Of a DNA stretch of 64,000 bases, positions 1 to 64,000 are shown piece by piece. The DNA comes from Rebecca billardiae RCC1528 (taxonomy: Eukaryota; Protista; Haptophyta): positions 4,092,001-4,156,000 of the forward strand of contig OZ251224.1 of NCBI GenBank assembly GCA_965240325.2, written 5' to 3'. Under the pieces are notes generated by a model. That model saw nothing but the letters and a program-made list of their open reading frames with translations. It did not search any database and was not told where the DNA came from. The position numbers and the translations under genes are program-made. The first letter of the stretch is position 1; every line of letters starts with the position of its first letter.

Positions 1-1943
1 CTGCCAGAGGGGCAACCGGAAGACACCTCCGCGCACGTAGCCGGGCGCACCGAAGATCGGGAGCAGCGCGAAGCCCTGGGGGACGGCGCGCGCGCCCGGC
101 GCCGCCGGCTTGGGCAGCGCGCGCACGTCGATCACGAGCGCGAGGTGGGCCGGCGCGCCGCCGCCCTCGCCGCCCGCGTCGCCCGCGCCCGGCGGCGGCA
201 GCGCGTCGCGAGCGAACACGCGCGCGTGGCCAGGCCAGGCTGGCGCGCGCAGCTCTGAGGCGTCGTCGGGCGCGCCGGCGATGTGCGCGCCCGCGTGCGC
301 CTCGGCTGCGGGCGGCGTGCGGTACAGGTGGGCCGGGGGGCTCAGGCTCGCGACGGCGCTGCTGAGGGCGACCTGCGCGGCGCGGCGGCGGCGCGGGGCG
401 GCACGGCGCGCGCGCACGCGCCGGCGCGCGCGGGCGGGCGTCAACGCGGCGGCGCGGCGCGGCGCGCGGCGCGTGTCGCGCGTGTCGCGCGAGGCGGTGC
501 GCACGTTTGGCAGGTTGTGCGCACGCAGCAGCGCGACGGAGAAGCCCTGGCTGCGGTGGAAGGGCAGGCCGCGCCACACGGGCAGTGGCGGCGGCGGCCG
601 CGGACCTCCAAGCGCCTTCTCGTAGCCCGCCGCCGCCCACGCCTCGAGATCGGCGTCGGCGGTGTCGTCGGCGTCGGCGGGTCCGTCGGCGTCGTCGGCG
701 TCCGCGGCGACGACGGCGTCACCGGCTGCGGTGGAGGCGGTGGCGGCGGCGCTGAGCCGCGCGCGCAGCGCAAGCAGCCGCGCGCGCACCGTCTCCGCCG
801 CACGCGCCGCGCGCCGCGCGCGCGCCCTCTGCCGCAGCACCTCCGCCTCCGCACCCGTCGGCCGTGCACCCTCGCCATCGTAAGCTCCGCTCGAGTAGGG
901 CGGGGGCGCGGCGCGCGCGCGCACGCGCTCGCGCTCGGCTGCGGAGGCGGGGTCGGCGGCGCTCTCCTCGGCGGCGCTGGGCGGCAGCAGCCGCAGCCCG
1001 TCGCCGGAGCGCAGCGCGGGCAGCACGCGCACGAGGACAGAGCAGCACGGCAGCGGCGCCAGGCCCGGCGGCACGCCGCCGCCCGCCGCGGCCGCGCCGC
1101 CGCCGGCCGCGGGCGCGCCGCCGCCGCCCGCCGCCGCCGAGCTCGCGGCCGACTCGGCCGCGCCCACGCGCAGCTGCACGGCGCCCAGGTTGGCGGCGAA
1201 GACGCGCGCGCCCGCGTGCGCGCCCACGCGCGCGCCGCCGCCGCCGCCCGCCTCCGCGCGCTCGACGAACAGAGGCATGGCGGCCGCGCCCAGCACGCGC
1301 ACCGCGACCGCCGCGTCCGCGCCGCGCCGGCCCGGCCCGCCGCGCGCGTCCAAGTCCAGGGTGAGCAGTGTGAGCTCGAGGGTGCTGCTCGGGTCGACGA
1401 CGGCGTCGCGCAGCGCGGCGCGTACGCGCAGCGCGGGCGCGCGCGCGTCCGCGCCCAGCGCCGCCGAGCCCGCGCGCACCGTCCGCCCGCCGCCGAGGTT
1501 GAGCGCGGCGCCGCCGGCCGTGCGCACGCGCATCTGCAGCCGCAGCCCGGCCGCGTTGTCTGGCACGCCCAACACGCCGTCGACGAGGATGTCGAGGCCG
1601 TCGCCCGGGCTGAACGGCGTGCGCGGCGCGGGGCGCGGCGTGCCGGGGCACCACAGCTGCGCGGGCACCCCGCTGAGCAGCGCGCCGGCGCCCGCGGAGC
1701 CACCGGCTGCGCCGAGCTCGGCGCCGGCCGCGGCCGCGGCGTCGTCAGATGCGAGCGCAGTTGCTGCGCCGCTGCCGCCGAGCGGCGGCGGCGCCGCCGC
1801 CTTCGTCGCCGCCTCGCCCCACGACACGATGCGCCGGCCGCCGCGCGCGCCGCCGCGCGCGCGCAGCCGCACGCGCAGCTGCGGCCGCGCCGCCGCCGCG
1901 CCCTCCGCCGCCGCCGCCGCCGCATCGTCATCGCCGCCGCCGC

Positions 1944-1998
<55 letters not shown>

Positions 1999-2821
1999 CG
2001 CGCCCGCGCCGCGCGCGCGGCTGGCGCGGCGCGCCGCGTAAGCGGCGGCGCGGCGCGCCACCTCGGCGCCGAGGCTGGCGGGCACGGGCGGCGGCGCGAG
2101 GCTGAGCGTGTGCTCGCCCTCCGCGCCCTCCGCCGCCGCGCCGAACGCAGCCACCGCCGCGCCGCCCTCCCGCTGCCGCAGCAGTGGCAGCACAGACCAG
2201 CCAATCACAGCCACCACGCGCGCCGCGCCGCCGCCGCCGCCCTCGGCGGCGCCGCCGCCGCGCGGCGCGAGCGCGCCGCCGCCGCCGCCGCCGTCCGAGT
2301 CGCTCTCGTCCGAGTCGGTGCCGCCGCCGCCGCCGCCGCCGCTCGCCGCCGCCGCCGCCGCCGAGGGCCCGTCGCGCTTGGCGATCAGCAGCAGCGCCGC
2401 CGCGGACGCGCGCGCCATTGCGTGCGCGCCACGCGAGGCGCCCCACCGCGGGAGCGCGCCCGCGCCGCCGCTCGCGCCGCCGCCGCCGCCGCCGCGCGCT
2501 CGCTCGCCGCCCTCGACGGCGACGAGCTCGACGAGCGCGGCGGGCGCGTCGGCGCCGCCCACCGGCGCGCCCGCGGGCGCGTGCACCGGCGCGCCGCCGC
2601 CCGCCGCCTCCGCCCAGCGCGCGTCCCAGCTGCCGTCGCCTCGCAGCAGCGCGCGTGCCGACAGCCAGTGCGCGCCGGGCAGCCGCGCGCCGCCGCGGCC
2701 GAGCGGCGTGACTCGCACGGCGAGGGGCGCGCGCCCGCCGCCCGCGGTGTGCGCGCGGAAGGCGCGCGCGTCGGCGGGCTCGAACCCGCGCAGCGAGAGC
2801 GGCGCCAGCTCCAGATGCTGC

Positions 2822-2864
<43 letters not shown>

Positions 2865-3302
2865 TCGCGCGCGGCCGCGGCGCGGGCGGCGCGGGCGGCG
2901 GCGCGGCGGCCGACGTGGCGCCGCCGTCCGCTGCGGCGGCCGTGCCGCCGGCGGGCGGCGCGGCGGGCGGCGCGGCGACGGGCACGGCCGCGCGCACGCC
3001 CGGCGGCGGCTGCGGCACGTACGCCCACCTCGCCGCGACGCCCGCCGACTCGGCCGCGCGCGCGTCCGCGCCGCGCGCGATGCGCAGCAGTACCTCTGCG
3101 CCGTGGCCGGCGGGGCGCGCGCTCGGCGGCGGCGAGGGCGCGCCGCCGCCGCCGTCGCCGTCGCCGAGCGCGGCGCGCGCGGCGCGCGCCGGGTCGAGCG
3201 GCGGCGGGCGGAGCGCGCAGCGCCAGTGCCCGGCCGCCAGCGCGCCGCCGCCCTCCGCGCCGTCGAACAGCCTCACCGCCGCCCAGCCAAGCGCACGCGT
3301 CG

Positions 3303-3343
<41 letters not shown>

Positions 3344-5862
3344 AGCCGCGGCGCCGTGTCTGCGCCGCCTCCGTGTGGCAGCAGCTGCTGCACCTCAAGC
3401 AGCAGCAGGAGGGAGGCGTCCGCGGGCTGGGAGGGGAAGTCGCGCCTCGCGCGCAGCGCCGCGCGCGCGCGCCCCTCGCCCCCGCCCTCCTTCGCCCCCT
3501 CCTCACACGCCGCCTCGGGCAGTGGCCGCACCGCCGAGCGCGCGCTCGCCCCCGCGTACAGCGCAAACACGCACCGCACGCGCGCCGTGCGCGGCGGCAA
3601 GCCGTCGATGGCGTCGAAGAGGAGGGCGAAGCCCTCGTGCGGCGCGTACGGCGCGCCGACGAGCAGGAGCGGCGGCGCGCCGCCGCCCGCGCCGCCCTCC
3701 GCGCCGCCCTCCGCGCCGCCCGCGCCGTCGCCCGCGCCGCCGCCCGCGCCGCCGCCCGCGCCGCCGCCCGCGCCCGCCTTGGCCAGAGCGTCGTTCAGCC
3801 GCCGCCGCTCGTCCAGTTCCTCTCTGGCAAAGACGAGGTGCGCCATCTCGGACTCGTGCCGGATGCGCAGCCGCTCCAGCTCGATGCGCTCCTCGTCCAG
3901 CGCAGCGCGCAGCGCCGCCGGGCCGCCGCCGCCGCGCGCGTCCGCGCCGCCGCCCGCGCCGCCGCCCTCGCGCGTCGCGCCGCCGCGCCGCTCGGCAGCA
4001 GACGACGCGGCGGCGGCGGAGGCGGCGGAGGCGGGGCGGTGGCGGGCGCGGCCGCGGCGGCGCGCGGCGGCGGAGCGCCCGCCGCCCTCCGCGTCGGAGG
4101 AGGCGTCCGACGCGCTCTCCGCCCACGAGCCCGGCTCGCCCGACGACGAGCCGCCGCCCTCGCTGCTCGACGCGCTCCCCGCGCCCGCCCGCTCGCGCCG
4201 CCGCCGCCCGCGCCCGCCGCCGCCGCCGCGCGGCCGCGCCGCGCTCCGCTCGAGCGTCCGCAGCTGCCTGCGCGCCCTCTGCGCGCGCTGCTCGTGCTGC
4301 TGCAGCGAGGCCTGGAGGGTCTGCAGGTGCGCGCCGAGCAGCGCGGCGACGGGGTCGGCGTCGGGCGCGCCCGCCGAGCCCGCGCCCGCCGAGCTCCGCG
4401 CGCTCGCGACCCCCGCCGCCGCCGCCGCCGCGCCCACAAGCGGCGGCGGGTGCGGCGCGCGCCGCGCCGCGCCGCCAGCCGTTGTGGCGGCGCGTGCGTA
4501 CAGCGCTGCAGCCTCGGCACGCAGCGCGCCGATGGCGGTGAGCACGCGCGTGTCCGCGCCGCCGCCCGCCATGTACTGTGCCTCGAGCTCGTCCGCCTCG
4601 TCGAGCAGCTCGCGCGCCATGCGCGCCGGGCCGCCCGCGCCGGGCACGTCCGCAGCAGCTGGCGGCGGCTGCGGCTGCGGCTGCGGCTGCGGCGGCGGCT
4701 GCGGCGGCGGCTGCGGCTGCGGCTGGGGCGGCGAGCTTGGCGCCGGCAGCGCGGCCGCGGGCGCGGGCGCGGGGAGCGGCAGCAACGGCGCCAGCGGCGA
4801 GGGCGAGCGCGCACGCGCCACGCGCGCCGCCGCTCTCGCCGCCATCGCCGCCTCCGCAGCCGCCTCCGCCTCCGCCGCCTCCGCCTCCGCCGCCGTCGCC
4901 TCCCGCGCGCGCGGCGCGCGTGCCAGGCCGGCCGCGCCGTCGCCGAGGGCGAAGGGGTAGCGCGCGCCGCGCTCGCGCGCCGCGGCGAGCGCCTCGCGCG
5001 ACGCCTTCAGCCGCGCCGCCTGCGCGTGCAGCGCCTCCAGCTCCAGCGCCAACGCCGCCTCGCGCTCCGCCCGCCGCTCGCGCACGGTGCGCGCGGCCGC
5101 GCGCGCGCCCGCCGAGCGCGGCAGCGGCGGCTCGGGGCGGCGCGGCGGCGGCGGCGAGGCGGCGGGCGCGCCCGCAGGCGCTCGGGGGAGGGAGGGCGGC
5201 ACGGGCCACTCGCGCGTGCACGCCTCGGCCGCCACGCCGCCCTCGGCCCCAGCGGGCGCGCCCGCCGCCTCGGCGGGACTGGCGGCGGCGGGCGCGGCCG
5301 GCTCCGCGGCCGCGGGGGCGCCGCCGAGCGCGCGCAGCGCGCGCAGCGCCTCAGCGCGCTCGCGGCGCGCGGCGGCGGCGGCGGCGCGGCGCTCGCGCGC
5401 GCCCTCCTCCAGCGCGCGCAGCTCCGCCGCGCGCGCGTCCGCCGCGTCTACGAGGCTCATCTGCTCGGCGCGGAGCGCGCGGCCGCGCGCCGCCTCATCC
5501 TCTGCGCTCCAGCGCGCCTCGCGCGCGGTGGCGGCGGCGGCGCGCTCGCGCTCGGCGCCGAGGGCGGCGCCGAGTTCGGCGAGCGTCAGCTGCGACGCGC
5601 CGTCCGGCGCGTCGCTCTCGCCGCGCCCGTCGAGGTACGCGGCCGCCGCGCGCAGCACAGCGTCGTCGCCGCCGCCCGCCGGCGCGACGCGCTCGACCAT
5701 GCGCGCGCGAGCGCGCTCGTGCAGCTCGGAGCCGACGCAGAAGCGGCGGAGGTGACGCTCGAGCTGGTCTGCGCCCGCGAGCACCAGCCCGCACGCCGGG
5801 CACGCGTGCTGCCCGCCCGGGTCGCGGGGCTCATCGCCGTCCGCGCCGGCGGTGGCAGCCAT
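1..5862 (-). CDS. CCDC17-like large protein (N-terminal C2HC Zn-finger, coiled coil, C2-like domains); 3' end lies outside the window
   Basis: Read manually. ATG at 5862 gives MAATAG...HACPACGLVLAGADQLERHLRRFCVGS. The same frame gives PYAPHEGFALLFDAIDGLP (~3640-3595), LGWAAVRLFD...GHWRCALRPPPLDP (~3290-3190), GDGLDILVDGVLGVPDN (~1605-1555) and GFALLPIFG..YVRGGVFRLPLWQ at the edge, all resembling CCDC17-family motifs. It is probably absent from the track because no stop is reached; small in-frame introns cannot be excluded. Confidence 0.75.
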
Positions 5863-6055
5863 GCGCACGCGCGCAACGGCGAACTGCGCGCATCCGGACC
5901 CAGCCAAAACGGGCCAACCGCTAAGAGCTCTATCTTGGCCTTGCGCGCAGGTTAGCCGTTGGCAGCCGCGCGCGCTGGCCAGGGCCATTTTGAGTGCGGG
6001 CCAGACTGATAACTGTAAACTGTGATGCGACATCGGAGGCTCCCCCGTATGCATC

Positions 6056-6057
<2 letters not shown>

Positions 6058-6109
<52 letters not shown>
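6058..6109. repeat. (GA)n microsatellite
   Basis: Perfect GA dinucleotide run. Confidence 0.95.
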
Positions 6110-6111
<2 letters not shown>

Positions 6112-6783
6112 TGAGGCGAATAGTCAGAGGAAGCGGATCGGGCAGCAGGCTCCTGCGTGATCCCGCCTAGTGACCGGCTAGTCCGCCGAACGGCACCGGC
6201 GCCCGCGGGCGGGGCCGCGAGGTCGCCCCCGGACGGGCCGGAGGGCCGAGGCCCGGGCGAGGGCGGCGGGGGTGCGGCACACGTTCGGGCAAGGCGGCCG
6301 TACCGTCCGGCCCGGACGCCGGTCGGCACCGCGGCCGACGCGGATCATGTCGGCAGCGCAGAGCCCGTCAGACGTGCGCTTCGCCCGAATCGCCGTTCGC
6401 GGGTAAACCGTGTGAACCCGTCAGTTCAGAGTTCAGTCCGATCGGCAGTGAAGCGCGGCGCGGCTGTGCAGCACTGTCGATGAATGTGAGCACCCGCCAC
6501 ATGATTGATATTTGATGATGCGTATTGCGTTCAGCATGGGAGCCTGTCCGACGCTGTCGGCCGGGCCGGGCGGAGGCGGATGTGAATGCCGTGCGCGTGA
6601 GGTCCGAGAGGAAGCGACGCGCCGCCGTCTCCAGACCGAGTCGTCCGCTGCGCCGCGGCTGCAGAGAAGCACGGGGTGGGGACGGCGCTGCGACCGAGCA
6701 GCGGCAGGGCGGGCAGGCTGGCATCGGGCCCCAGCGCGTGGCGCGCCCGCGCGAGAGGGCGGGGCAGCCAGGCCGCACCCGCC

Positions 6784-8013
6784 TCAGCGCGCGCGCCCGC
6801 CGCCCAGCCCCACCGGCCGCCACGCGAGGTCGGTCGGGTCCGTGTCGGCGAGGCCGAGCGCGGGCGGCAGCAGCGGCAGGTCCAGCAGAGGCCGGCGCCG
6901 AGCGCGCGCCGCGGGCCGCGCTGCCGGCGCGGCACCTGGCGCGGCGCGTGAGAGCTCGCGCGCGTGCGCGCGCGCATTCGACGCGGCGATGCGCGCGTGC
7001 GCGTGCGCCTGCCCCGCCTCGCCCTCGAGCAGCAGCCGCGCGTGCTGCAGCGCCAGTGCCACGTCCAGCGCGCTGCGGCCGCCCAGCGCGGACGGCGCCG
7101 CGCCGACGCTCGCGTCCGCGTCGGCATCGGCGGCGTGCGCGTCAGCATCGGCGGCGTGCGCGTCGGCGGCGCGCAGCGCGAGCGCGTGCGCCGTGAGCAG
7201 CCGCGCGTGCACGAGCGGCAGCGGGCGCAGCGCCAGCGGCTCGGCCTCCGCCGCGCCGTCCGCCGCGGCGGGCGCGCCGAGCGCACGCGCACGCTCGGCG
7301 TGGGCGTCAAACTCAGAGAGGGCGGCGGCCGCGGTGCCGACGGCCTCGGCGTGGAGCCCGTTCACGCGGAGGCAGCGCGCGCGGACGCACGCGACGCTCG
7401 CGCGCACGCTCGCGCCCACCGCGCTCACCGTCGCGCTGCCCAGCGCCGCGCCCGCGCCGCCGGCTGAGAGTTGCGCGGCCGCGTGCTGCAGCTGCGTGGA
7501 CGCGTCAATCGAGCAGCGGAGCGCGCCGAGCTGGTCGCCGGTGGAGAGAGCGAGCTCGGCGGCGATGGCGTCGCACATCGCGACGAGCCGCGCGTCCGGC
7601 CGGTGCGCGCGCTCCGCCATGTACCGCGCGCGCTTCAGCGACGTGCGCGCGCGCTCGGTCTCGCCGCGTGCGAGGTCGTTCACAGCCGTGTCGATCAGCA
7701 CGCCCGCCAGGTCGACGTACGCGTCGTGGCCGAGGCCGGAGCGGGACTGGGCCTCAGCGACGCGGAGTGCGGACGCGAGCTCGCGCGCCGCCGCCTCGTG
7801 GTCGCCCGCGTGGTGCGCGAGCACGCCCGCGAGGTTGTAGCGCAGCCGGTCGGACAGCAGCAGCTCAGGCGCGCGCGGCGCCGGCGGCGGGTGCGCCGCC
7901 GCGCCGGAGGGCGCGCCCTGGTGCGCGTCGAGCAGCTCGCGGGCGATGCGGTGGCGCCCGTGGGCGAACGCCGAGATGGCGCTGGCAAGCGACGACGGCG
8001 CGCGCCGGAGCAT
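6784..8013 (-). CDS. Hypothetical alpha-helical TPR-like protein
   Basis: 409-aa ATG ORF with amphipathic helical units (YNLAGVLAHHAGDHEAAARELASAL; GETERARTSLKRA; GDQLGALRCSIDA) and a possible N-terminal targeting peptide. Confidence 0.55.
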   Translation of the reverse strand: MLRRAPSSLASAISAFAHGRHRIARELLDAHQGAPSGAAAHPPPAPRAPELLLSDRLRYNLAGVLAHHAGDHEAAARELASALRVAEAQSRSGLGHDAYVDLAGVLIDTAVNDLARGETERARTSLKRARYMAERAHRPDARLVAMCDAIAAELALSTGDQLGALRCSIDASTQLQHAAAQLSAGGAGAALGSATVSAVGASVRASVACVRARCLRVNGLHAEAVGTAAAALSEFDAHAERARALGAPAAADGAAEAEPLALRPLPLVHARLLTAHALALRAADAHAADADAHAADADADASVGAAPSALGGRSALDVALALQHARLLLEGEAGQAHAHARIAASNARAHARELSRAAPGAAPAARPAARARRRPLLDLPLLPPALGLADTDPTDLAWRPVGLGGGRAR

Positions 8014-43273: not shown

Positions 43274-44155
43274 TCACGCGTCGAGCTGCTCCCCGAGCGA
43301 GCCGAGCGCGGCGGCGAGGTCGAAGGGTAGCGGCGGCACTGAGACAAGCCGCACGTGCGCGCGTGTCGCGGGGTGGCGAGCGCACAGACGTCCGAGCTCG
43401 GAGGCGAAGGTCTCGACGGCCTTCGCCTCGTCGCTGCCCGCCGAAGGGGCGGTTGGCTGGTCGCGCGCCATGTACCCGATGGTGGACACGATGGTCGGCA
43501 CGTCGAAGACGATGGCAGACCTCTGCTGCTGCGCGGGCGGGTACAGGTGGGCAAAGAGCGGGCGGCGCTCCGCGCCAGCCGCCTTCACCTCGGGCTCGAC
43601 GGCGCAGATGGTGCCCGCCCGCATGGCCGCCGTGAGCAGGGCCTTTGCGTCCGACTCAGGCGCATCGGGTGGGAGCGCGGGGCCACGTGGGACGAGCACG
43701 TGCAGCCGCGGGGAGGCGGGCGCGCCGGCGAGCGAGACGCGTGCAGTCTCGAACACGCCGCGCTGGCGCTCGACACGCAGCCGCACAGCCACGCTGCCGC
43801 CGTCGCCCGGGCTCGCGTCGTCGTCGGCCCCGCTCTGGCGCAGGCTCGCCGCGAACGGCAGGACAAAGTTGTAAAAGTACGCGAGCGCCAGGCCTTTCGC
43901 GAGCGCGCGCTGCTCCCTCGCCGCCTGTGTCGCGCGGCTCGTGAGCACGCCGAGTGTGAGGAGCGCCGAGCCGAATGCCGCGGTGCGCAGGTTCGAAGCG
44001 ACGACGTTTGGGGCGCGTGCGCCGGCCAGAATCAGCGCCACGATAAGGGCCGCCCCGAGGGTGCCAGTCATGCCGCCTGCGGACGCGCCCGGCCAGGCGG
44101 CGCGCCTGTCGTGCGAGGAGAGGAGCCTCACATCGGCCACACGGACGTCCGCCAT
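43274..44155 (-). CDS. TM + bacterial-like STING-domain protein A (293 aa, ~2 TM)
   Basis: LAKGLALAYFYNFVLP...PRLHVLVP...ERRPLF...IVFDVPTIVSTI...VETFASELGRL follows the motif order of the STING cyclic-dinucleotide-binding domain. Intronless. Confidence 0.8.
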   Translation of the reverse strand: MADVRVADVRLLSSHDRRAAWPGASAGGMTGTLGAALIVALILAGARAPNVVASNLRTAAFGSALLTLGVLTSRATQAAREQRALAKGLALAYFYNFVLPFAASLRQSGADDDASPGDGGSVAVRLRVERQRGVFETARVSLAGAPASPRLHVLVPRGPALPPDAPESDAKALLTAAMRAGTICAVEPEVKAAGAERRPLFAHLYPPAQQQRSAIVFDVPTIVSTIGYMARDQPTAPSAGSDEAKAVETFASELGRLCARHPATRAHVRLVSVPPLPFDLAAALGSLGEQLDA

Positions 44156-44334
44156 CTTTGGTCGCTCGTCCCGGCGCAACAGCAAAGTCGAACCTTTAGT
44201 TGGGCCGTGATCAACCAGCGATCCGTTTTCTGAAAAGAATGCGCTCACTTTTTGATTTTTCCAGTGCAGCAGCTCTACAGCTCGTCCAAGGCGCCGCCCG
44301 GACACTGCGCTTGCGAACCAGCGCACTGGCCGGG
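44156..44334. promoter_or_regulatory. Putative bidirectional promoter of the STING pair (179 bp)
   Basis: Short AT-richer spacer between the two divergent ATGs; includes the palindrome TTTTCTGAAAA. Confidence 0.5.
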
Positions 44335-45624
44335 ATGTGCCGCACGCACGAGCTGATCGCCCAGCCGTCTCACCTCGCCGTCGACGGGTTGGAGGGTGTT
44401 TACGAGGTGAGGCAGCCGCTGACATTTGCCTCGCCGCCCAGCGGCTTCGACTGGCGCACGCCCTTCGAGTGGCTCGTCTTCGTGCTGCTGCTCGGCGTGG
44501 GGTTTGGCGTGCTGCTCGCGCTCAAGATACGAGACGCGGGGCCCGGCGCGGAGGGCGAGGTGCTCTGGCTGGTGGCGGGCGGCACGCTGTTCAACGCAGG
44601 GCAGACGCCTCTCCTCATGTCCCTCCTCGCACTCGTCACCGGCTTCGGCACGCGCCGACGCCGTGACGCGGTGCGCGTGCTCGTCGCGGCCGTTCTGTTT
44701 GGCGCCGGCGTGACGATCCTGGTCGGCGTCTCCTACCGCGCGCCCGAGGGCGGCGTGACGGAGGAAGGCGCCGAGAACATCACCGAGGACTTTCTCTTCA
44801 ACGTCTTCGAGACCGGCGCCTTCTTCTTCATCTACAAGTTCTTCTTCCTCGAGGGCGACGAGGAGGAGAAGCTGCTGACGGTCGCGGAGCGGCTGCGGGA
44901 GGTGAGCTCGTCGCCCGGCGCCGGGCTGGCGCTCGGCTACTTCTACAACTTCGTGCAGCCCGTCGTGCGCGCGATGGAGCACAACGGGGGCGCTGGCGGC
45001 GAGCTGGAGGTCACGATGGACGCCAAGGACAAGGCCGAGCGCGTGCGCACACTACGCGGCGCGGGCGGCCGCCCACCGCGGCTGCACGTGCTGGTGCCGC
45101 GCGACCTGTCGCGCGACGGCGGGCAGGACCTCAAGCAGGTGCTGCAGAGCGCGCAGACGAGCCGTGCCATCCTGCGCGGCCTGATCAAGGGGCAGCAGGG
45201 CCACCGCGACTTGCAGGTCTTCTTCCTCAAGGAGGAGGGCACGGAGTGCGCGGGCCTCTTCGACCTGCCCACCGCCATCAACGCGTGCGCCAGCCTGGTG
45301 AAGGACCTGGGCGCGGCGCGCGCCGAGTCGGACGCCGCGCGCGCGCCCGGCGCGCAGGGCGGCGGCGCGTGGGCTCGCATGCGTGCGTGGTGGGACGGCT
45401 TCGACGTGGACGAGGTGCTCGCGCCGCTCGGCCCCGAGCTCGCCTCCGCGACGGACATCACCGTGCCGCGCTTTGTCGCGGACTTTAGCAACTACCTGCT
45501 CGGGCTTGTGCGGCTGCACGGGCTGGAGGAGCGCGTCGCCCTCGTCTCCGTGCCGCAGCCGCCGCTTGACTTCGGCGCGCTCGAGCGCTCCATCGCGGCG
45601 TCGAGTGCCGCCCAGCACGCATAG
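44335..45624 (+). CDS. 4TM + bacterial-like STING-domain protein B (429 aa)
   Basis: Four hydrophobic segments, then SPGAGLALGYFYNFVQPV...PRLHVLVPRDL...GHRDLQVF...GLFDLPTAINAC...VADFSNYLLGLV. Intronless; paralog of 43274-44155. Confidence 0.85.
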   Translation: MCRTHELIAQPSHLAVDGLEGVYEVRQPLTFASPPSGFDWRTPFEWLVFVLLLGVGFGVLLALKIRDAGPGAEGEVLWLVAGGTLFNAGQTPLLMSLLALVTGFGTRRRRDAVRVLVAAVLFGAGVTILVGVSYRAPEGGVTEEGAENITEDFLFNVFETGAFFFIYKFFFLEGDEEEKLLTVAERLREVSSSPGAGLALGYFYNFVQPVVRAMEHNGGAGGELEVTMDAKDKAERVRTLRGAGGRPPRLHVLVPRDLSRDGGQDLKQVLQSAQTSRAILRGLIKGQQGHRDLQVFFLKEEGTECAGLFDLPTAINACASLVKDLGAARAESDAARAPGAQGGGAWARMRAWWDGFDVDEVLAPLGPELASATDITVPRFVADFSNYLLGLVRLHGLEERVALVSVPQPPLDFGALERSIAASSAAQHA

Positions 45625-45793: not shown

Positions 45794-47224
45794 ATGGCCA
45801 GCACAGCAGGGGCGCACGCGCGTTGCCTCGCGCTCGACGGCCTGCCTCCCGAGGTGCTCGGCCGCATCGTCTCGTGGCTGCCGCCGCGCGGCATCGCCAG
45901 CCTGAACGCCACCGCGCGCCTCTTCCTCGCCGCGCCGCCCGGCGGGTGCTCGCCAGTCGAGCGCGCGCTGCGTGAGCGTGCGTGCGCGCGGGGGCACGCG
46001 CGTGCTCTGCCGGTGTCGCTGCCCCCGGGCGTGCGCACGTGGACGGAGGAGTTGTTCGCGCGTGAGCGCACCCTCGCTCTTGCCCGCGCGCATGCCGCAG
46101 CCGTCGACTCCGGCAACGGCTTCAGCGCATTTGTGGACGCGGAGGGCGGGCTGCACACGTGCGGCGAGGAGGAGGAGGCAGACCATCACGGGGTGCCAAC
46201 GGGTGAGTACTCAGCGCGTTTAGCTTTGGGTCATGACGGCGACGCGACCGTGCCGACGCGCGTGCCCTCGCTGTCTTCGGTGCGCGTGGTCGCTGTGGCC
46301 GCTGGCTGGGCCCACCTGCTCGCGCTGAGCGATGCAGGCGCCGTGTACGGCTGCGGCCAGAACCGGAGGGGCCAGCTCGGGCTGGGCGACACGGTGGAGC
46401 GGCGGTCCTTCGCTCCGGTGGATGCTATGCGGCGTGAAGCCGTCGTGGGCATCGCGGCCGGCTTCCACCGCAGCCTCGCGCTCGCAGCAGCTGGGTGCGC
46501 GTACAGCTGGGGCTGCAACGGCTACGGCCAGCTCGGCCACGGAGACACGAAGGAGCGGCGGCAGCCGACGCGCTTCGAGGCACTGGAAGGCGTGCGCGTG
46601 GGCGGGGTGAGCGCGGGTGCGGTGACCACGCTTCTACTCTCGACAGGCGGTGCCGTCTACTCGTGTGGGATTGGCCGCAGTGGCCGTCTTGGTCACGGCG
46701 ATGAGCAGCATCAGCACACGCCGAAGCGCATCGAGGCGCTCGCGGGCGTGTGCGCCGTGCACGTGAGCGCGGGCCACATGCACAGCCTGGTGGTGGACGG
46801 TGGGGTGGGCGTGCACTCGTTTGGAGGGGGCTATGCAGGCTGCCTCGGCCACGAAGACAAGCGCTCGCAGCTGCTGCCCAAGCGCGTCGAGGCGCTGCGG
46901 GCTACCGTGCACGCCGTGCGCGCGTACGCTGGCCGCAAGGGCAGTGCGGTGCTGGCCGCGGACGGCACCGTGCACGCGGTTGGGGACAACAGCTGAGGCC
47001 AGCTGGGTATGCCAGGGAGGTCGCTCAGTTGGGAGGGTGCAGGGCTGTGGCCCAGGCGGGTGATCGTCCCTGCCCGTGCGCGCGTGCTGGAGTGCGCGCT
47101 TGGCCCCTTCCACGCACTCTTCGTCACGGAGGAGGGTGCCGTGTACACGTATGGCGCCAAGTCGGCCGCTCTCGGCCTTGGGCTTAGCGCGGCCCATTGC
47201 GCCCATTGCCGTGCGGATGATGTA
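45794..47224 (+). pseudogene. F-box-like + RCC1 repeat gene with in-frame TGA (46994-46996) and a MITE in the last repeat
   Basis: LDGLPPEVLGRIVSWLPPRGIASL (F-box-like); repeats AAGWAHLLAL..G.VYGCGQNRRGQLGLG; VGDNS*GQLG continues in frame into a further RCC1 repeat. Confidence 0.8.
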
Positions 47225-55637: not shown

Positions 55638-58600
55638 ACACACGCACACACACACACACGCACACGCACACACACACACACACACGCACACGCACACACA
55701 CGCACACGCACACACACACACACACACGCACACGCACACGCACACACACACACACACACGCACACACGCACACGCACACACACCTCGTACGGCGTCTCCG
55801 GCTGCTCGTCGATGTACATCTTGAGGTTCTGCTGCGCGGTCTGCAGGTCGGAGGTCATCCACTGGTACGGGATGTTCCACCCGACCGCGCCGTACTTGCG
55901 CCGCTCCTGGATCACCGCGTTGAAGAAGGCGAGGCCGAACATCATGTTCTTGTACACCGCAGGCCGCGCGGAGGACTCAAACACCTGTGCGCGCGCGAGA
56001 GGGCGAGAGGGCGCGCGCGTGGGCGCGTGCGTGCGTGAGCACGCGCGCAGACGCCCATGCCCTGCGGGCCTGTGCCCCGCGCCCCGCGCCGCTGTGCCGC
56101 GCCGCGCTGCGCTGTGGCCAGCGCGTGCGGTGCGCGCGCGTGGCCTGCTGCGCGCGTGCTGTGCGTGCGCGTGCGCGTGCGCGTGAGCGTGCGGTCGCGT
56201 GGTCGCGCGGTGCGCGCACCTTCTCGTCGAGCTCCTGGTAGGAGCGCGAGAGGTTGGCCTTGAGCCCCTTGGGCGGCTCGATGGTGAGCTTGAGCGAGTT
56301 CTGCAGCACCGTCACCGGGAACTTGCCCGTGGGCATCGTCGTGAGCCACAGCCGGAAGTCCTCGTTCAGCTCGCCCTCGGGCGCGTCGCGCAGCTCCTCG
56401 AGCTTGCGGTCGAGCGTGGGCAGCCACGACTCTGCGAGGTGGCAGTTCTGCAGGCAGAGCCAGCCGCCCTCCGCCTTGGCCTGGTCGAGGAGGCGCTCGG
56501 CGATCGGCCCCTGCCCCTGCCCGAGCGAGATCAGGTGCAGGTTCGAGCCGAGCTCGTACCCCTGCGCCTTGGCCAGCTGGAAGAGGTACTGCGTGGGGTC
56601 GGCGCCCGAGACGAGCACAAAGATGAGTGGCGTGCGCGCGGCAGAGTCCTTGTACGTCGCCTGCGAGCGCGGCGCGGCGCGGCGCGGCGCGGGCGGGGGT
56701 GAGGCGATGCGCGCCGAGGGTGGAGGCTGGCCGACGCACGGGCGTGCGCGGCCGAGCGCAGCGCCGCCCCCCCCTCCCTCGTCCCCGCACGCGCCCCGCC
56801 CTTGCGCCCATCGCAGCAGCGGTGGCGCGCGCGCGCAGCCCGCGGCCCGCTGGTGTGCTGGCTGGAGGGCGCGCGCACCTCGAGGTCAAAGCCGGGCGCC
56901 TCGACGAACTCGTCGCCCAGCCGTGCGCCGATGAAGACGGTTGTGCCGAACACCACCTTCTCCGGCCTGCGCGCACACGGCAGCGCACGGCAGCGCAGCG
57001 CAGCGCGCGGCACGGCGGCGCCCCGGCGGACCGAGCGCCGCGTGAGTCCGGGCCGCGCGTCCGGGCCGCGCGCGCCGGCGGCGGCGGCCGGCCGCGCGGG
57101 GGCCCGCGCGCCACGCGCTGCGCCTGCACGCGCGCGCGCGCGCGCGCACCTGAGCAGCTTGAGCACCAGCAGCTTCTGGAAGGGCCGCAGCTTGCTCTCC
57201 CAAGGCTCGGGCAGCGGCGCGCTCTGCGGCGCCTCCGCCAGGAAGAAATCCTGCGGGCAGCGGGGGGCGCAGCGCGCGCGGCGCGGGCGGGGCGCGTGAG
57301 CGAGCGAGCGGGTGCGCCGCGCCGCCGCTTCGGTCGCGCGGGCGCGTGGCCGCGCTCGCTCGCTCGCTCCGCGCGCGCGGCCGCGCGCGCGCGGCGCGGC
57401 GCGCGCGCGGCGCGGCCGCGGTGTCGCTCCGCGCGCGCGGCACGGCCACGCACCCGCCACTTGACGAGGTTCCTCGAGACGTGCTCGGCGATGCCGAAGA
57501 GCGCGGTGATCTCGTCGGCCGCGCAGAGGAACGACCACGCGCGCTCGTCCAGCCAGCTCGCGTCGTCGCCCACCGGCCGCTTCAGGTGCGGCACGCCGAG
57601 CACAGCCGGCTGCAGGAAGAGCTGCCACTCGGCGGCGCTCACCTCGCCGCCGTGCCGGGCAATCTGCACGGCCACCATGAACGCGAAGAGCGCCTTGTGC
57701 CGCTCGAAGAGGCCGCGGCAGATCATGACGTACATCGCGCGCGTGATCGCGTCGATCAGGATCCCGAGCCGCTCCTGCAGCTCCAGCGCCTGCGGCGCCG
57801 CCGTGATCGTGTTGGCGAAGATCTGCTTGAAGTAGGGCAGGGAGTATTGGTACATGGCGTCGATCGTCGCAAAGTCGGCGACCACGAAGTAGATGATCGA
57901 GCCGCGCGACGCGACGGGGCGGTACTCCTCGCGCGCGAGGTCGATCTCCTTCGACGTCTCCTCCGCGGCGGACACCGCCACCTCCGTCTCGGACGACGTC
58001 TTCTTCGACGAGTCGAGCGTGTTGATCAGGTCCTCGTCGTCGAGGATGTTGCCCGACGCCTCGGCGAGCATCTTGAGGATCTTGTCCTCGAGCTCCGCCA
58101 TCGTGCGCCGCCCCGAGGCGATGGTGAGCACGAGCTTCTCCTTGCGCTCCTCCAGGTCGGGCCGCTCGAGCGCCGCGCACTCGGCGAGCAGCTGGTTCTC
58201 CAGCCCGGAGAAGGTGACGGTGAAGTTGACGACGGTCACCTTGATACAGATCTCCGGCGGGTAGTGCGGGTTGGCGAGCTTAGACGTCACGTAGAGCTTG
58301 AAGTCGTCCGAGTAGTCCACGTCGGTGTCGCCGATGCGGATGAGCGTGCGCCCCGCCTGCTTGAACACCTGCTTGAGCAGCACCGGGTCGAGCGACGGCT
58401 CGAGCGCCTGCTCCACGTTCTCGAGCAGCACGGGCAGCCCGACGCGGATCGCGCTCTCGAGCTTGCGCAAGTAGTCTGGCTGCGAGAGCTTGGTGAGCAC
58501 GAGCTTGTTGTCGCGCTCCATCCGCTTGATCCACGAGTTGGCCTGGCCCTGCGGGTCGATCATGAGGGGCCAGCGGCGCGAGCGCGTGACGAAGATCCCG

Positions 58601-61600
58601 TTCTCGATCGAGAGCTGGTCGCTCGGCAGCCCGTGCACGCCCCACTCGCGGATGGTGACCGGGTCGCCGAGCACGCCCGTCACCGAGAAGTGCTCCTCGC
58701 ACGGGATCTGCGCGTCGCGCGCCTGCTGCGTCCACTGCTGCGAGAGCTCGGCGCGGTACGTGGCGGTGAACGGGCCCTGGTACGCGATCGCGCCGGACGA
58801 GAGCACCACGTTCCCCACCAGGTTGTCGCGCGACTTCTCCAGCTTGACGCACAGCGACTCCCAGCGCGTGCGCTCTGAGCCGAGCCCGCCGATCAGCTTG
58901 CCCGCGCGCTCGAGCTTCTTGTGCACGTCGTTCTCCTTCTCCTGCAGCTCCTGCGCCTTGCGCTCGGCGGCCTGCAGCTTCTGCCGCAGCGCGCCCACGC
59001 GCGCCTCCACCTCCGCCAGCGCGTCCTGCTTCTCCTTGAGCAGCGACTGCGCCTCCTTGAGCTTGGCGGTCGCGCCGTCGAGCTTGGCGCGCTTGGGCGC
59101 CACCTGCGTCGCGACGCGCGAGTAGGTGTCCATCGCGCGCACCCACATGCACAGCGAGCGCGCGGCGGCGGAGACCTTGCCGACGGTGTCGGGCACGAAG
59201 GAGGGCTTCGACGTGTACCCCTTGCGCACCTTCGAGATCGTCTTCTCCGGGATGTTGTCCTTGTCGAACTCCTGCAGCTTGTTGGTGAAGTCTGTGTCGG
59301 CGAGCAGCTTCTTCGCCTCGCCCCACTCGGGCTTGGCGCCGAGCAGGATGCACACGGCCTCCATCACCATCTGCACGAGGTCGGGCGGCTTGGCGTACGA
59401 CTTGATCTCCTGGATGTCCTTCTTGTCCAGCGCCTTGAGCGCCTCCACCGCCGAGTTGTACGCGGGCATCGCCTCGTCGAGGTCGCGCTGCGCGTCGGCG
59501 GCGATCGCCTGCGCCTCGTTGGCGATCTCGGTCACGGCGGCCTCCTCCTTCGCCGTCTGCTCCTTCACGGCGTCGGCGGCCTTCTGGTCGCGCGCGACCT
59601 CCTCGAGCAGCTTCGCCGTGTCCTTCTGCGCCTGCGCGAGCACCGGCTGCATCTCGGTCAGCTCCACCTTCATCGTGTCCACCACGCGGTTGGTGGCGAT
59701 CAGCTTGTCGACGCCGCCGCGGTACCGCGAGATCTGCTGCGCGATCCGCTCGCGCTGCTCGGCGAGCGTGGTGAGGAAGAGGGTGAGCAGCTCGAGGTAC
59801 GAGGTGGGCGTGGTGTACGTGATGCGGCGCAGCTCGTCGTAGAACCGCGTCGTCGCCTTCGACACCGAGTAGTGGATGCTCACGCACACGTCGCACACGC
59901 CCGCCTTGATCTTGTCGCCGCCGAGGTCGACCGCCGCAAACTGGTGCTGCGCGACCGAGAGCAGCGCCTCCTGCGGCCACTCGTTGAACCAGTCGATGGT
60001 GCAGCAGTTGATGAGCGAGGGGAACATGCGGCAGCGCACGCGGAACGCGTCGCCGATCGGCGACATGCAGATCGCGATGTGCAGGTTCTCGCGCACCAGC
60101 TGCACAAAGTGCGCGTAGATGGCGTCGCGCGTCTCGAGCTTGCCCGCCGCCTTTGCGAGCGGCCGCACCGTCTGCAGCACGCGCTCGAGCTCGTCGGGCT
60201 CGAAGAGGTTGGGCACCTCGCCCGAGTTGAGGATGTTGTTGATGTCCTCGAGGAACGACTCGCGCACGATCTGCGTGTCCGAGAAGTAGAACACCGTCGG
60301 CGTGTCCGCGCCCGCCGCGCCGAGCATCGTCTTGAGGTCCTCTCTGAACGCGGGCTGGTCGTACGTGCGCGTGATCTCGATGTTCATGAACTCCATCTCC
60401 CAGATGGCCGCGGCGAGGCGGGTGAGCGACTGGCGGCCCGAGCCGCCCACGCCGACGAGCAGCGCGTTGCCCCGCGGCGCGCGCAGGATCCGCGCGATCC
60501 GCAGCGCGTGCATGCACGCGTCCTTGAAGAAGACGAGGTTCATCGGCTTGGTCGACGACACGTTGTAGTCGACCAAGTACTCGTCGAACTTGAACTGCGC
60601 CGCCGAGAGCTCGATGGGCTCGTACAGCCGCGCGTCGGCGTCGGCGGCCATGAACGCGCCGTACGCGAGCTCCTCGAACTGCGCCACCTCCCACGCGCGC
60701 TCGAGGTGCGCGCCCAGCCCCTTCCTCACCATCTCGTTGAAGCGGCCGCGGTCGGACGTGTCGACGAGCCGGTCGCGGAAGACGCGCGACATCTCGTGGC
60801 ACCACAGCCGCACGAGGTCGTCGGCGGTGGGGCACTTGGCGGGGGTGATCTGCAGCATGCCCTGCACGACCTTGGACAGGTCGCGCAGGTTGAACGTGTA
60901 GTGCGACTTGGCCGGCGTCGGCAGCATGCTCGAGCACATCTGGTCGTAGATGTCGATGGACGCGGAGATGACGGCGGGCGCGAGCGCCGCCACCTCGGCC
61001 GAGAAGACCGAGAGGAAGCCGGCGAGGATCGAGGTGAAGATGGTGCGCATCGAGTCGGGCGAGAGCAGCGGCACCCAGAGCATCACCATGTGCCGCATCA
61101 GCCGCGGCGTCATCGCGTTCCGCCCGCCGCCCGGCGGGCCGCACGCGGCGATCACCGAGGTGCTCTGCACGCTCTTGAAGAAGTGCTTCTTGAGGTCGTA
61201 GAAGCCGCCCTGGTCGATCGTCTGCCGCAGCAGCTCGATCGGCGGCTGCGCGCCGTACTTCTCGAGCGCGGGCATGTTGATGTCGTCGACGAAGAGCACC
61301 ATCTGCTTGCCCGACGGCGGGCCGAGCAGGTTCTTCCGCAGCTTCTCCAGCTTCGCCTCGAGCAGGTCCTGCACGTTGCGCGCCGACGTCTGCGCGGAGA
61401 AGGTGGACGCGATCGAGACGACGCCCTCGCCCGCGCGCTTGATGAAGTCCTCGACCATCACCGACTTGCCCGTGCCCGTCTCGCCGGCGAGCATGATGTG
61501 CGTGCTGTGCAGCGCGAGCGTGCGCAGCAGGTACGCGTAGCACGTCGTGTCCGTCGTGGGCACGAGGATGTTGAAGAAGGGCTGGTCGCGGTCGTACGCA

Positions 61601-64000
61601 AACGCGGGCAGCACGGATGCCCACGCGCGCGTCGGCGGCAGGCCCGCGTCGAGCGCCGCCGCGGCCTTCTTGGCCTCGGCGTCGTTGCTCTCGGGCACGG
61701 TGGGCGCGGTGACGAGGAAGTCGAAGACCGAGCGCTCCGGGTCGAACCCCGGCGCCAGCTCGCGCACCACCGCCTCGTCCTTGAGGAACAGGTCGAACTT
61801 GGGCCGCGAGTCGTCGTGCAGGTTGCCGCCGAGCGCCCACACGAGCGCAAACAGGAAGATGCGGTTCACGTGCGCCTTCAGGTCCTGCCGGTCGGGCTTA
61901 ACGCCCATCTCGGGGCGGAGCAGCGCGTCGAGGTACGCGAGCAGCGAGCGCACCAGGTTCGCGTCGACCGACGCCACGCCCTCCTTGCACTCGTCGCGCA
62001 CGAAGCCGAGCAGCTTGCCGAGGTACTCCTCGAAGAGCGAGCCAAAGTGGCCGCCCCACTCGGGCAGCACGGCCGGCACGACGTGCTCGCACCACGAGTC
62101 GGTGTACGGCCGCCAGCCGAGGTAGACGGCCTCCATGTACACCATCCCGCAGCGCGACACCGTCGCCGGCGACGCGACCGCCAGGTCGTTCACCTCGAAC
62201 AGCATGTGCATCTGCCGCGTCAGCTTGATGCGCTCGCCGTTGGAGAGGCAGAGCATCTTGTTGTCGTCGAGCACCGTGTTCATGTTCTCGATCCAGATCG
62301 CGTCGACGGGGCCGTCGAAGACGATCCACTTGCGGTTGAGCGTCTCGTCCGCGACCGCGCCGCGCACCAGCGTGGGCACCAGCCCGTCCGTCCACTCCTG
62401 CGTGAACGCGTTCACCGCGCCGTACAGCTCGCCCATCGTGACCGACTTTGGGTTGAGCGTGTACTCGTGCGTCACCTCGTAGTGCGGCGACTCGTCGCCG
62501 TCGCGCTTGAGCTGCGTGAGCGCGGAGGCGAGCATCTTGTGGCAGCACGTCTTGCCCGTGAGCGTGAGCCCCACCACCATCACGCCGTGCCGCACCAGCA
62601 TCGTCTCGAACAGCTGGATGATCTTGGCGACGTACGTGGGCACGGGCTGCAGCCGCGCCTTGCTCATCTCGTACTCGATGGCCTCCTGCAGCCGGCCGTA
62701 GTCCACGTTCGGGATCTCGACGCCGGGGAAGAGGTCCTGGATGATGGACATGAAGAGCGGCACGTCCTCCGACAGGAACTTGGGCAGGTTCGAGTCGCGC
62801 AGCGCGCGGATCAGCACGATGTGCTCCTCGAGCTCGGGGTTGGAGCGCTTGAGCTGCCCCGCCATCACGAGCACCGACTTGACGGCGCGCATCCCAAAGT
62901 CGTAGTGGTCCTGCTTGGAGAGCTGCTCGGAGGAGAGCTTGTACAGCTGGGTCATCTTGTTCGAGAGCGGCTTCGCCTCGGCGAACCCCTCGGAGAACAG
63001 CATGATCTCCGCGATCAGCCGGTAGTCCGGGATCATCATCGCGACCGGCCGGAAGAGCGCCTTGAGGTTGTCCGGCAGCTCGGCGCGGCCCGCGTACCCG
63101 GGGTTCATCGTGATGAAGACGCCGTAGCCCTTGTTGAGCGGGATCTCGACGCCCTCGAAGACGAAGCGCTGCCGGTCCTCCGCGATCGCGTTCTGGATCG
63201 TCTGGATCTGCTGCGCGATCACCGAGAGCACCTCGATGTTGATCCGGTTGAACTCGTCGAAGCACGCCCACGCGCCCGACTGCGCGAGCCCCGAGAAGAA
63301 GCGGCCCATCATCTTGTAGTCGAGGCCGTCGGAGCAGTTGAAGACGACGCACTGGCACGAGAGCGCCTTGGCGAGGTCCTTCGTCGTCTCCGTCTTCCCC
63401 GTGCCCGCCGGCCCCGCCGGCGCGCCGCCAAGGCGCAGGTGGAGCGCGCCGGTGAGCGTCATGTAGCACTTGTCGGTGAGCGGCGTGATCACGAGCCGCG
63501 GCGTGTTGCCCAGGTACTCGTACCCGTTGACGAAGCGCGAGTTGGTCTGGCGGATGACGCAGTCCTCGTGCACGCCGTCCGCGTACGACACGAGGTCGTG
63601 CACCTCGCCCGCCCAGTAGTACCGCAGCTGGCGCTGCCACTCGAAGTCGTTCACCCACGAGGTGCCGAGGCCGATCATCACGCCGACCGTGTCACGCGCG
63701 TGCACGTCGATCACGAGCTTCGCGCCGAGCGTGGTGCGCTGGAGCGGCGAGAGCTGGCCGCGCACGAGCTTGACCATCTCGTTGATCTTGCCCACCCAGT
63801 CCGTGTTGAAGTCGGTGAGCGCGCCCGGCGCCTCGCCCGTGTGCACGCGGTCGAGCGCGACCTCGACGCCCGCCGTCCACGCGACCTGCCCGATCATCAG
63901 GATCGACTGCGCCGCGTACCCAAAGGCCCACTCGGCCATCGGCGTGCCCGCGCGCATGCCGGCGATGCACCGCTTGGAGTCCTCGTACAGCGAGACGCGC
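54025..64000 (-). CDS. Axonemal inner-arm dynein heavy chain, DNAH6-like (5' part outside the window); introns 57251-57453, 56967-57149, 56661-56878, 55985-56219, 55246-55783
   Basis: [54 protein letters not shown], stalk/[30 protein letters not shown]-terminal [11 protein letters not shown]. Confidence 0.95.
55425..55783. repeat. (CA)n/(CACG)n microsatellite at a dynein intron donor
   Basis: Direct reading. Confidence 0.95.

Follow-up and report, generated by a model that had tools for sequence, protein, structure and literature searches.

Why should an alga keep two genes for the same receptor head to head, their starts separated by a spacer of only 179 bp? The question is raised by a 64,000-nucleotide stretch of DNA from the haptophyte Rebecca billardiae RCC1528 (contig OZ251224.1, positions 4,092,001 to 4,156,000; hereafter, the window), in which two long open reading frames (ORFs) occupy positions 43274-45624. 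The two lie on opposite strands in divergent orientation, with their 5' ends facing, and are here called A (minus strand) and B (plus strand). Their products resemble STING, a central innate-immune receptor. The analysis below leads us to conclude, with high confidence, that A and B are paralogous bacterial-like STINGs (blSTINGs) of a pavlovophyte-like haptophyte, and that they stem from an old inverted duplication whose products have stayed head to head, with 100-350 bp between them, in three or more diverged organisms. What the two proteins do together is a separate matter, for which several explanations are weighed.

The ORF of gene A extends over 43274-44425 (minus), and its start was placed at the ATG at 44155 (MADVRV...), the first methionine that fits the orthologues; that of gene B extends over 44200-45624 (plus), with the start placed at the ATG at 44335 (MCRTHE...). 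An alternative in-frame ATG upstream of the B start, at 44239, would leave a spacer of only 83 bp. Guanine-plus-cytosine (GC) content is 58% in the spacer and ~70% in the genes, as it is in the window at large. Because both ORFs are uninterrupted, align end to end with their orthologues and fold confidently in structural models, the coding parts of A and B are taken to be intronless (the untranslated regions may contain introns). A first, sequence-only reading of the locus had described two intronless divergent genes with a 179-bp spacer and a series of STING motifs common to both; for the coding parts this description holds, and all of the quoted motifs are present, in the same order in A and B (Table 1). 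The two proteins share 31% identity over 159 amino acids (BLASTP, E = 1e-10).

Assignment of both proteins to STING draws on profiles and on predicted structure. Each scores above the gathering cut-off (27.1 bits) of the Pfam family prok_STING (PF20300), A with 28.4 bits and B with 39.4 bits, while the animal family STING_LBD (PF15009) gives A 19.7 bits (below the cut-off of 27) and B no match. The PADLOC model for TIR-STING effectors matches the STING part of B (6.6e-8). Searches of the PDB with single sequences gave no STING match for A and reached only E = 0.06 for B. When a profile of the A+B family was compared with PDB chains, the best matches were STING/Cap12 proteins of the bacterial cyclic-oligonucleotide-based antiphage signalling system (CBASS): 8HWJ at 2.5e-11, followed by 9LMQ, 8HWI, 7UN9, 7EBL and 6WT4; an animal STING reached only 0.005. 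AlphaFold2 models of the single chains, built on a 36-sequence alignment, have a mean predicted local distance difference test score (pLDDT) of 85.8 and a predicted template-modelling score (pTM) of 0.81 for A, and 81.3 and 0.73 for B. Among the Foldseek matches listed against the PDB, every significant match of B is a STING structure, and those of A are likewise all STING: both models align with bacterial STING binding domains at TM-scores of 0.6-0.76 (normalised by target), at ~13-18% sequence identity, and with full-length human STING over about 340-420 columns (~410 columns for B against the full-length human cryo-EM chains). The sequence-only reading was thus right to see STING proteins here, closer to the bacterial than to the animal form: the closeness is one of profile scores, the tree described below holding no bacterial outgroup.

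Relatives of A and B are few. Word-indexed homology searches returned almost only the queries themselves, and an exhaustive HMMER search with the A+B profile was needed; it gave 55 matches among 1.84 billion cluster representatives. The named matches are all eukaryotic: the choanoflagellate Didymoeca costata, the stramenopiles Pinguiococcus pyrenoidosus and Hondaea fermentalgiana, an MMETSP transcript, rotifers of the genus Rotaria, and Emiliania huxleyi (XP_005791771.1). Together with the PF20300 scores and the membrane helices, these relatives bear out the proposed membership in the family of eukaryotic blSTINGs fused to a transmembrane domain. The Rotaria protein (Rotaria sp. Silwood1; P0023 and the P0056-P0064 cluster) is a blSTING-type protein of 360 amino acids with 10 cluster members, on contigs of up to 6.8 Mb; bdelloid rotifers are animals, in which a metazoan-type STING is expected, and the gene could reflect either horizontal acquisition or contamination. 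A six-frame scan of the window with a hidden Markov model (HMM) of the STING domain found exactly two STING ORFs, A and B; given the rarity of the family, their presence in one locus is not chance.

The setting of the pair is that of a eukaryotic nuclear genome, with genes for an axonemal dynein heavy chain, importin-beta, RCC1 and WD40 proteins elsewhere in the window. The dynein heavy chain (55942-63957, minus) finds its best match, at 84% identity, in Pavlova gyrans, the next best being at most 69% identical; the 84% identity, together with a GC content of ~70%, points to a flagellate, pavlovophyte-like haptophyte as host, in agreement with the algal origin already suspected.

The sequence-only reading had named conservation of the divergent pair as a check, and the same head-to-head A/B arrangement is present on contigs of two other organisms. 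The protein closest to A (P0003), 48% identical to it, is encoded on L001, a contig of 6.6 kb from a JGI metagenome; directly upstream of P0003, on the opposite strand, is an orthologue of B. This B orthologue has ~60 residues ahead of the lid that other B proteins do not have; they may be either genuine insertions or introns left unspliced. For the N-terminal part of B, the closest relative (P0004; 39%) is encoded on Logan contigs from two runs (L003 and L004). On L003 its gene contains a 96-nt GT...AG intron in the lid region (1962-2057), the removal of which gives a continuous protein of 446 amino acids; window B has no intron at this position. Head to head with this gene, on L003/L004, is an A-type STING ORF with two or three hydrophobic N-terminal segments and an A-type lid. 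Start codons are separated by 347 bp on L001 and by 100 bp on L003.

Beyond the pair itself no synteny was detected. Flanks of 3.7 kb beyond A on L001 and of 1 kb beyond B on L003 were compared with the 64-kb window, and only the STING genes match. The neighbour of the pair on L001 is a Sel1/MYND gene; in the window the pair has an ORF without assignment on one side and an RCC1-like gene on the other. The latter, directly downstream of B (45794-46996, plus), encodes an RCC1-repeat propeller protein (Pfam RCC1, 8e-51). In six-frame HMM scans, the window, L001 and L003/L004 alone gave two STING ORFs; every other blSTING locus examined gave one. Five of these loci have several kb of flanking sequence (L006, L009 from Emiliania, L010 from Hondaea, L011 and L017/L018), and the remainder have less (L005, L007, L008, L012-L016, L019 and L020). 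A scan of metagenomes with a 7-sequence alignment (the 36-sequence alignment being too diverse for locus scanning) added two short contigs, each with a single gene, and no further pair, and a scan of viral contigs found no blSTING locus. Persistence of the pair in three organisms suggests that A and B work together.

How old is the duplication? A tree of the STING domain was calculated from 37 rows, with three very long branches omitted and the A ORF of L001 in place of the shorter P0003. A clade unites the three B proteins with support of 100/98; within it L003 branches first, followed by the window and L001. The A proteins of the window and L001 likewise group together (99/98). Making window A the sister of window B costs 82 log-likelihood units and is rejected by the approximately unbiased (AU) test (p = 1.8e-10), which places the duplication before the split between the window and L001 lineages. 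The data are consistent with a single clade of all six sequences, which would correspond to one duplication in a shared ancestor (p = 0.44). In pairwise comparison, B proteins are 37-46% identical to one another and A proteins 28-45%, whereas A and B share 24-29% identity. Recent duplication of the genes, or gene conversion between them, was also considered and is ruled out by the same AU result.

All six proteins retain the residues expected of a ligand pocket, namely the aromatic of helix alpha-1, the lid arginine, and the aspartate and threonine of FDxPT. By motif register, all of these positions, the lid arginine and the threonine included, coincide with known ligand contacts: the aromatic corresponds to F92 of FsSTING, F171 of PcSTING and Y167 of human STING, and the aspartate to the guanine-N2-contacting D252 of PcSTING and D169 of FsSTING (PMC8748872). 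Judged from these residues, A and B each appear to have an intact cyclic-dinucleotide pocket. This bears on one explanation of the pair, according to which A is a decaying duplicate without a function of its own. A does evolve faster than B (the stem of the A clade measures 1.01 compared with 0.60 for the B clade, and the L003 A branch 3.23), and the A protein of L003 has lost the VSVP and PR motifs. However, the A ORF is intact in three organisms at the identities given above, the alpha-1 aromatic, the R-P-L-F lid and FDxPT are kept in all three, and the AlphaFold2 model of A is the confident one described earlier. We regard decay as highly improbable.

The two proteins differ most clearly in their membrane domains. 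The four-helix architecture found in the majority of blSTINGs is present in B, where a connector helix (residues 176-191) joins the membrane helices to the STING domain, and is not present in A, which has two helices. Helix 1 of A is clearly hydrophobic (hydropathy peak of 1.91 at residues 26-44); helix 2, beginning at residue 52, is marginally so and runs on into STING helix alpha-1. In AFDB, bacterial prok_STING proteins of 261-275 amino acids match A from query residues 22 and 39, and thus cover its N-terminal helices. As modelled, A is a two-helix architectural variant of blSTING and B an ordinary member. Since the nearest sequence relatives of A are four-helix eukaryotic proteins, the two-helix state is probably a secondary loss.

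A protein that has lost two of four membrane helices and the connector while keeping a canonical pocket might act as a regulator or decoy of B, soaking up ligand or capping B oligomers and so setting a threshold, in the manner of dominant-negative short STING isoforms. The longer branches of the A clade would fit such a role, and a shared promoter would fix the stoichiometry of the two proteins. Nothing demonstrates inhibition, however, and the architecture of A is that of the bacterial two-helix STING proteins, which are effectors in their own right: a decoy function for A seems decidedly unlikely.

Differences extend to the binding domain. B lids are polar after the arginine in all three organisms (HRDLQ in the window, HREQN in L001 and HRRKN in L003), and B is without the ExxRG hairpin motif of the family; the three A copies all retain both ExxRG and the R-P-L-F lid. 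B further carries an insert (Table 1), which A does not have and the two B orthologues conserve; it is modelled with low confidence (pLDDT 51-57 over residues 341-370). The asymmetry that the sequence-only reading had described, of about two against four membrane helices and of differing lids, is thus real, with the qualification that the unusual lid belongs to B, while A keeps the consensus. Each copy has thus kept ancestral features lost by the other: four helices in B, the canonical lid and ExxRG in A.

The combination is found in one protein elsewhere. P0005 (L006:2474-3739), a single four-helix blSTING of 421 amino acids whose gene sits between transaldolase and thioredoxin-like genes, carries ExxRG and an HRPMF lid in its STING domain and is 36% identical to A; with a B-like membrane domain and an A-like binding domain, it has the look of an unduplicated form. 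A fresh acquisition of A from bacteria, to which its two-helix layout might be attributed, was rejected on account of this 36% identity to a four-helix eukaryotic protein, as against ~13-18% to bacterial chains.

STING binds its ligand as a dimer via helix alpha-1, and after duplication of a homodimeric protein the two copies continue to form heteromers as long as their interface does not diverge. Because helix alpha-1 is almost identical in A and B, the two proteins – if produced together – should form mixed dimers, or mixed ligand-induced oligomers, in addition to homodimers. Production together is probable, since spacers of 100-350 bp leave room for one promoter region only: the short spacer would then serve as a shared bidirectional promoter. 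In a mixed assembly, B would supply the four-helix membrane domain, the connector and the B-specific insert (presumably the output side), and A the canonical lid of the family on a minimal two-helix anchor. The complementary losses in A and B fit such a sharing of tasks inside a single receptor module. That a mixed A/B assembly acts as one receptor module is a tentative proposal, to which we give a little less than an even chance; physical contact between A and B, an output at the membrane and a role in immunity are all things that we infer. By analogy with choanoflagellate blSTINGs, the ligand is most likely 3'3'-cyclic di-GMP (c-di-GMP), a preference that the derived lid of B may shift.

A more specific form of this proposal is that the receptor is an obligate heteromer, established early in the pavlovophyte haptophytes, in which A and B would pair asymmetrically, with two unlike lids over a single pocket; A would bring the ancestral R-P-L-F lid, and B the four-helix membrane and output domain. 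We think this unlikely. If true, such a heteromer would be the first of its kind, and its asymmetry could serve the recognition of an asymmetric nucleotide, or provide a built-in split between sensor and executor.

The principal alternative is that A and B are independent homodimeric sensors, now differing in ligand specificity or cellular location, their adjacency being a remnant of inverted tandem duplication preserved by the tiny spacer. The systematic difference between lids (R-P-L-F in A, H-R followed by polar residues in B) can be counted in its favour, given that the lid motif sets ligand specificity in bacterial STINGs (PMC8748872). Animals with several STINGs exist, one AFDB match being named 'Stimulator of interferon genes protein 5' (from Stylophora), and the single-gene state of the other blSTING loci examined indicates that one copy is enough to function. 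Yet independence would not lead one to expect a pair that stays intact in three organisms though the flanking genes differ, nor a dimer helix alpha-1 that is undiverged between A and B and so offers no insulation from mixing, nor that each copy should be without an ancestral feature kept by the other. Independent sensors are, in our judgement, somewhat unlikely, although the idea deserves to be taken seriously.

A number of observations count against an old, jointly acting A/B module. The A protein of L003 sits on a very long branch that joins the A clade weakly (62/9), and an independent duplication in the L003 lineage is compatible with the data (p = 0.10). The three pair-bearing organisms may be rather closely related, protein divergence being the measure used here for how deep the conservation reaches. 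A tiny spacer is a small target for rearrangement, and adjacency could persist without selection. Probable co-expression is read from the length of the spacer, and a motif shared by the three spacers, which a common promoter might display, was sought and not found, the best candidate being a 10-mer common to two of them and within chance expectation. Membrane domains of two and four helices might block formation of a full-length heterodimer. Finally, the 63 long ORFs of the window contain no SMODS, Mab-21, OAS or GGDEF domain (short or intron-split genes could escape such a scan), nor was a GGDEF domain found in the window by tblastn; without a cyclase in the window, A and B do not make up a CBASS-like unit of synthase and receptor.

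Comparison with known systems places the locus among the blSTINGs described by Culbertson and Levin (2023), which combine a PF20300-type domain with N-terminal helices, usually four in number, and occur in protists mostly without CD-NTases, the cGAS/DncV-like nucleotidyltransferases (PMC10732462). A and B share with them the PF20300-type domain joined to membrane helices in a microbial eukaryote – B with the typical four – and their nearest relatives are the blSTINGs of Didymoeca, Pinguiococcus, Hondaea and Emiliania. The blSTINGs of that study are single genes, whereas here there is a divergent pair in which A has two helices. Emiliania, Isochrysidales CCMP1244 and Haptolina represent the haptophytes there, and the STING files contain no Pavlovales (PMC10732462); the A/B pair extends blSTING to a second haptophyte class. 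The best guide to the A/B ligand comes from Stephanoeca diplocostata and Diaphanoeca grandis, two choanoflagellates whose blSTINGs, the only ones assayed to date, bind 3'3'-c-di-GMP (Kd 0.6-1.8 uM) and do not bind 2'3'-cyclic GMP-AMP (bioRxiv 10.1101/2025.09.04.674280). These belong to the same family and are likewise stand-alone receptors without a linked cGAS-like receptor (cGLR); they differ in being single genes, and in that the lid of B departs from the family consensus.

The closest solved structures are those of bacterial transmembrane-STING and TIR-STING (Cap12) effectors of CBASS (6WT4, 7UN8, 8HWI, 8HWJ and 9LMQ), which share the fold, and A has the same layout of two helices followed by STING as the prok_STING proteins of 261-275 amino acids. 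Unlike these effectors, A and B are eukaryotic nuclear genes, with no operon and no adjacent CD-NTase, and one orthologue contains a spliceosomal intron. A compact two-gene STING locus has its closest protist precedent in Monosiga brevicollis, in which cGLR and STING genes lie 178 bp apart and have been read as a functional unit (bioRxiv 10.1101/2025.09.04.674280). There, however, the partner is a nucleotide synthase and the STING metazoan-like, whereas here the partner is a second STING. A search of the literature found no description of heteromers of STING paralogues or of a paired STING locus. In plants, the paired nucleotide-binding leucine-rich-repeat receptors RRS1/RPS4 and RGA4/RGA5 are divergent paralogous immune receptors with a shared promoter, which form a heterocomplex with divided roles: the arrangement is alike, the protein family is unrelated to STING, and the likeness is one of analogy only.

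To our knowledge, all described forms of STING act as homodimers. A conserved and structurally complementary pair offers a testable case of possible heteromeric STING signalling, in a group of proteins that forms a bridge between bacterial and animal STING; if heteromeric, the pair would also be an instance of receptor subfunctionalisation in a protist. The algae that bear it are ecologically important, and face giant viruses and bacterial associates. The question of how blSTINGs signal when no synthase is linked to them has been openly raised (PMC10732462).

Table 1. Positions of the A/B locus and of related features on other contigs (positions refer to the window unless a contig is named).
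Feature	Position	Strand	Details	Evidence
Gene A, short blSTING paralogue	43274..44155	minus	293 aa + stop; stop codon 43274-43276	
Gene B, full-length blSTING paralogue with four transmembrane helices	44335..45624	plus	429 aa + stop; stop codon 45622-45624	
Spacer between start codons, presumed bidirectional promoter	44156..44334	none	179 bp	
A, two N-terminal helices	43922..44095	minus	residues 21-78; helices 21-45 and 52-110	AlphaFold2; hydropathy
B, four membrane helices	44455..44844	plus	residues 41-170; helices 41-68, 73-102, 108-135, 143-170	AlphaFold2
A, STING cyclic-dinucleotide-binding domain	43277..43903	minus	residues 85-293	Pfam, AlphaFold2, Foldseek
B, STING domain	44914..45621	plus	residues 194-429	Pfam, AlphaFold2, Foldseek
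A, helix alpha-1 motif	43865..43894	minus	GLALAYFYNF; nearly invariant F97 at base-stacking position	family alignment
B, helix alpha-1 motif	44923..44952	plus	GLALGYFYNF; nearly invariant F206	family alignment
A, lid	43553..43567	minus	RRPLF; fits family consensus HRPMF	alignment
B, lid	45202..45225	plus	HRDLQVFF; Arg kept, next three residues polar (family: P-M-F)	alignment
A, FDVPT motif	43493..43507	minus	nearly invariant D218	family alignment
B, FDLPT motif	45259..45273	plus	nearly invariant D310	family alignment
B-clade insert	45346..45468	plus	~residues 338-378 (~40 residues); WW...DEVL core	alignment
A, motifs by residue			GLALAYFYNF 88-97; LHVLVPR 151-157; RRPLF 197-201; FDVPT 217-221; VSVP 271-274	
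B, motifs by residue			GLALGYFYNF 197-206; LHVLVPR 250-256; HRDLQVFF 290-297; FDLPT 309-313; VSVP 404-407	
B orthologue on L001	L001:699-1952 and 172-863	minus	split by 10-N scaffold gap 864-873	
Emiliania blSTING/GGDEF pair	L009:6404-7399 and L009:8001-9422	minus; plus		
Gene upstream of blSTING on L017-L020	L017:2136-3113; L018:2171-3184; L019:456-1469; L020:640-1653	all minus		

A different neighbour of blSTING is found in Emiliania huxleyi CCMP1516, where the gene for XP_005791771.1 (scaffold KB863647.1) lies head to head with a GGDEF gene, ~600 bp away. The product of the latter matches Pfam GGDEF with 39.8 bits (cut-off 23.8) and contains the diguanylate cyclase motifs DxDxFKxxND (as ADLDNFKTVND) and GGDEI (as RFGGDEI). 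The adjacency may represent an endogenous pair of c-di-GMP synthase and receptor in a eukaryote; it hints at a possible c-di-GMP-STING axis, and so bears on how blSTINGs could be fed c-di-GMP. A search of the literature found no link between GGDEF, STING and Emiliania. In the sister clade of Emiliania (L017-L020) the gene upstream of blSTING is not GGDEF, and the adjacency may therefore be coincidental.

Two minor observations concern other sequence. Positions 1-8000 of the window, of 76-85% GC, hold long overlapping ORFs on both strands without a Pfam match, among them one of 1890 amino acids (283-5955, plus). The four marine metagenome contigs L017-L020, which may stem from one or a few close species, each carry the same divergent upstream gene of 325-337 amino acids, ~1.3 kb from blSTING; it belongs to no Pfam family and shows only a weak CX5R signature of the phosphatase type (E about 0.04). 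All four contigs also have an ORF of 99 amino acids immediately downstream of blSTING.

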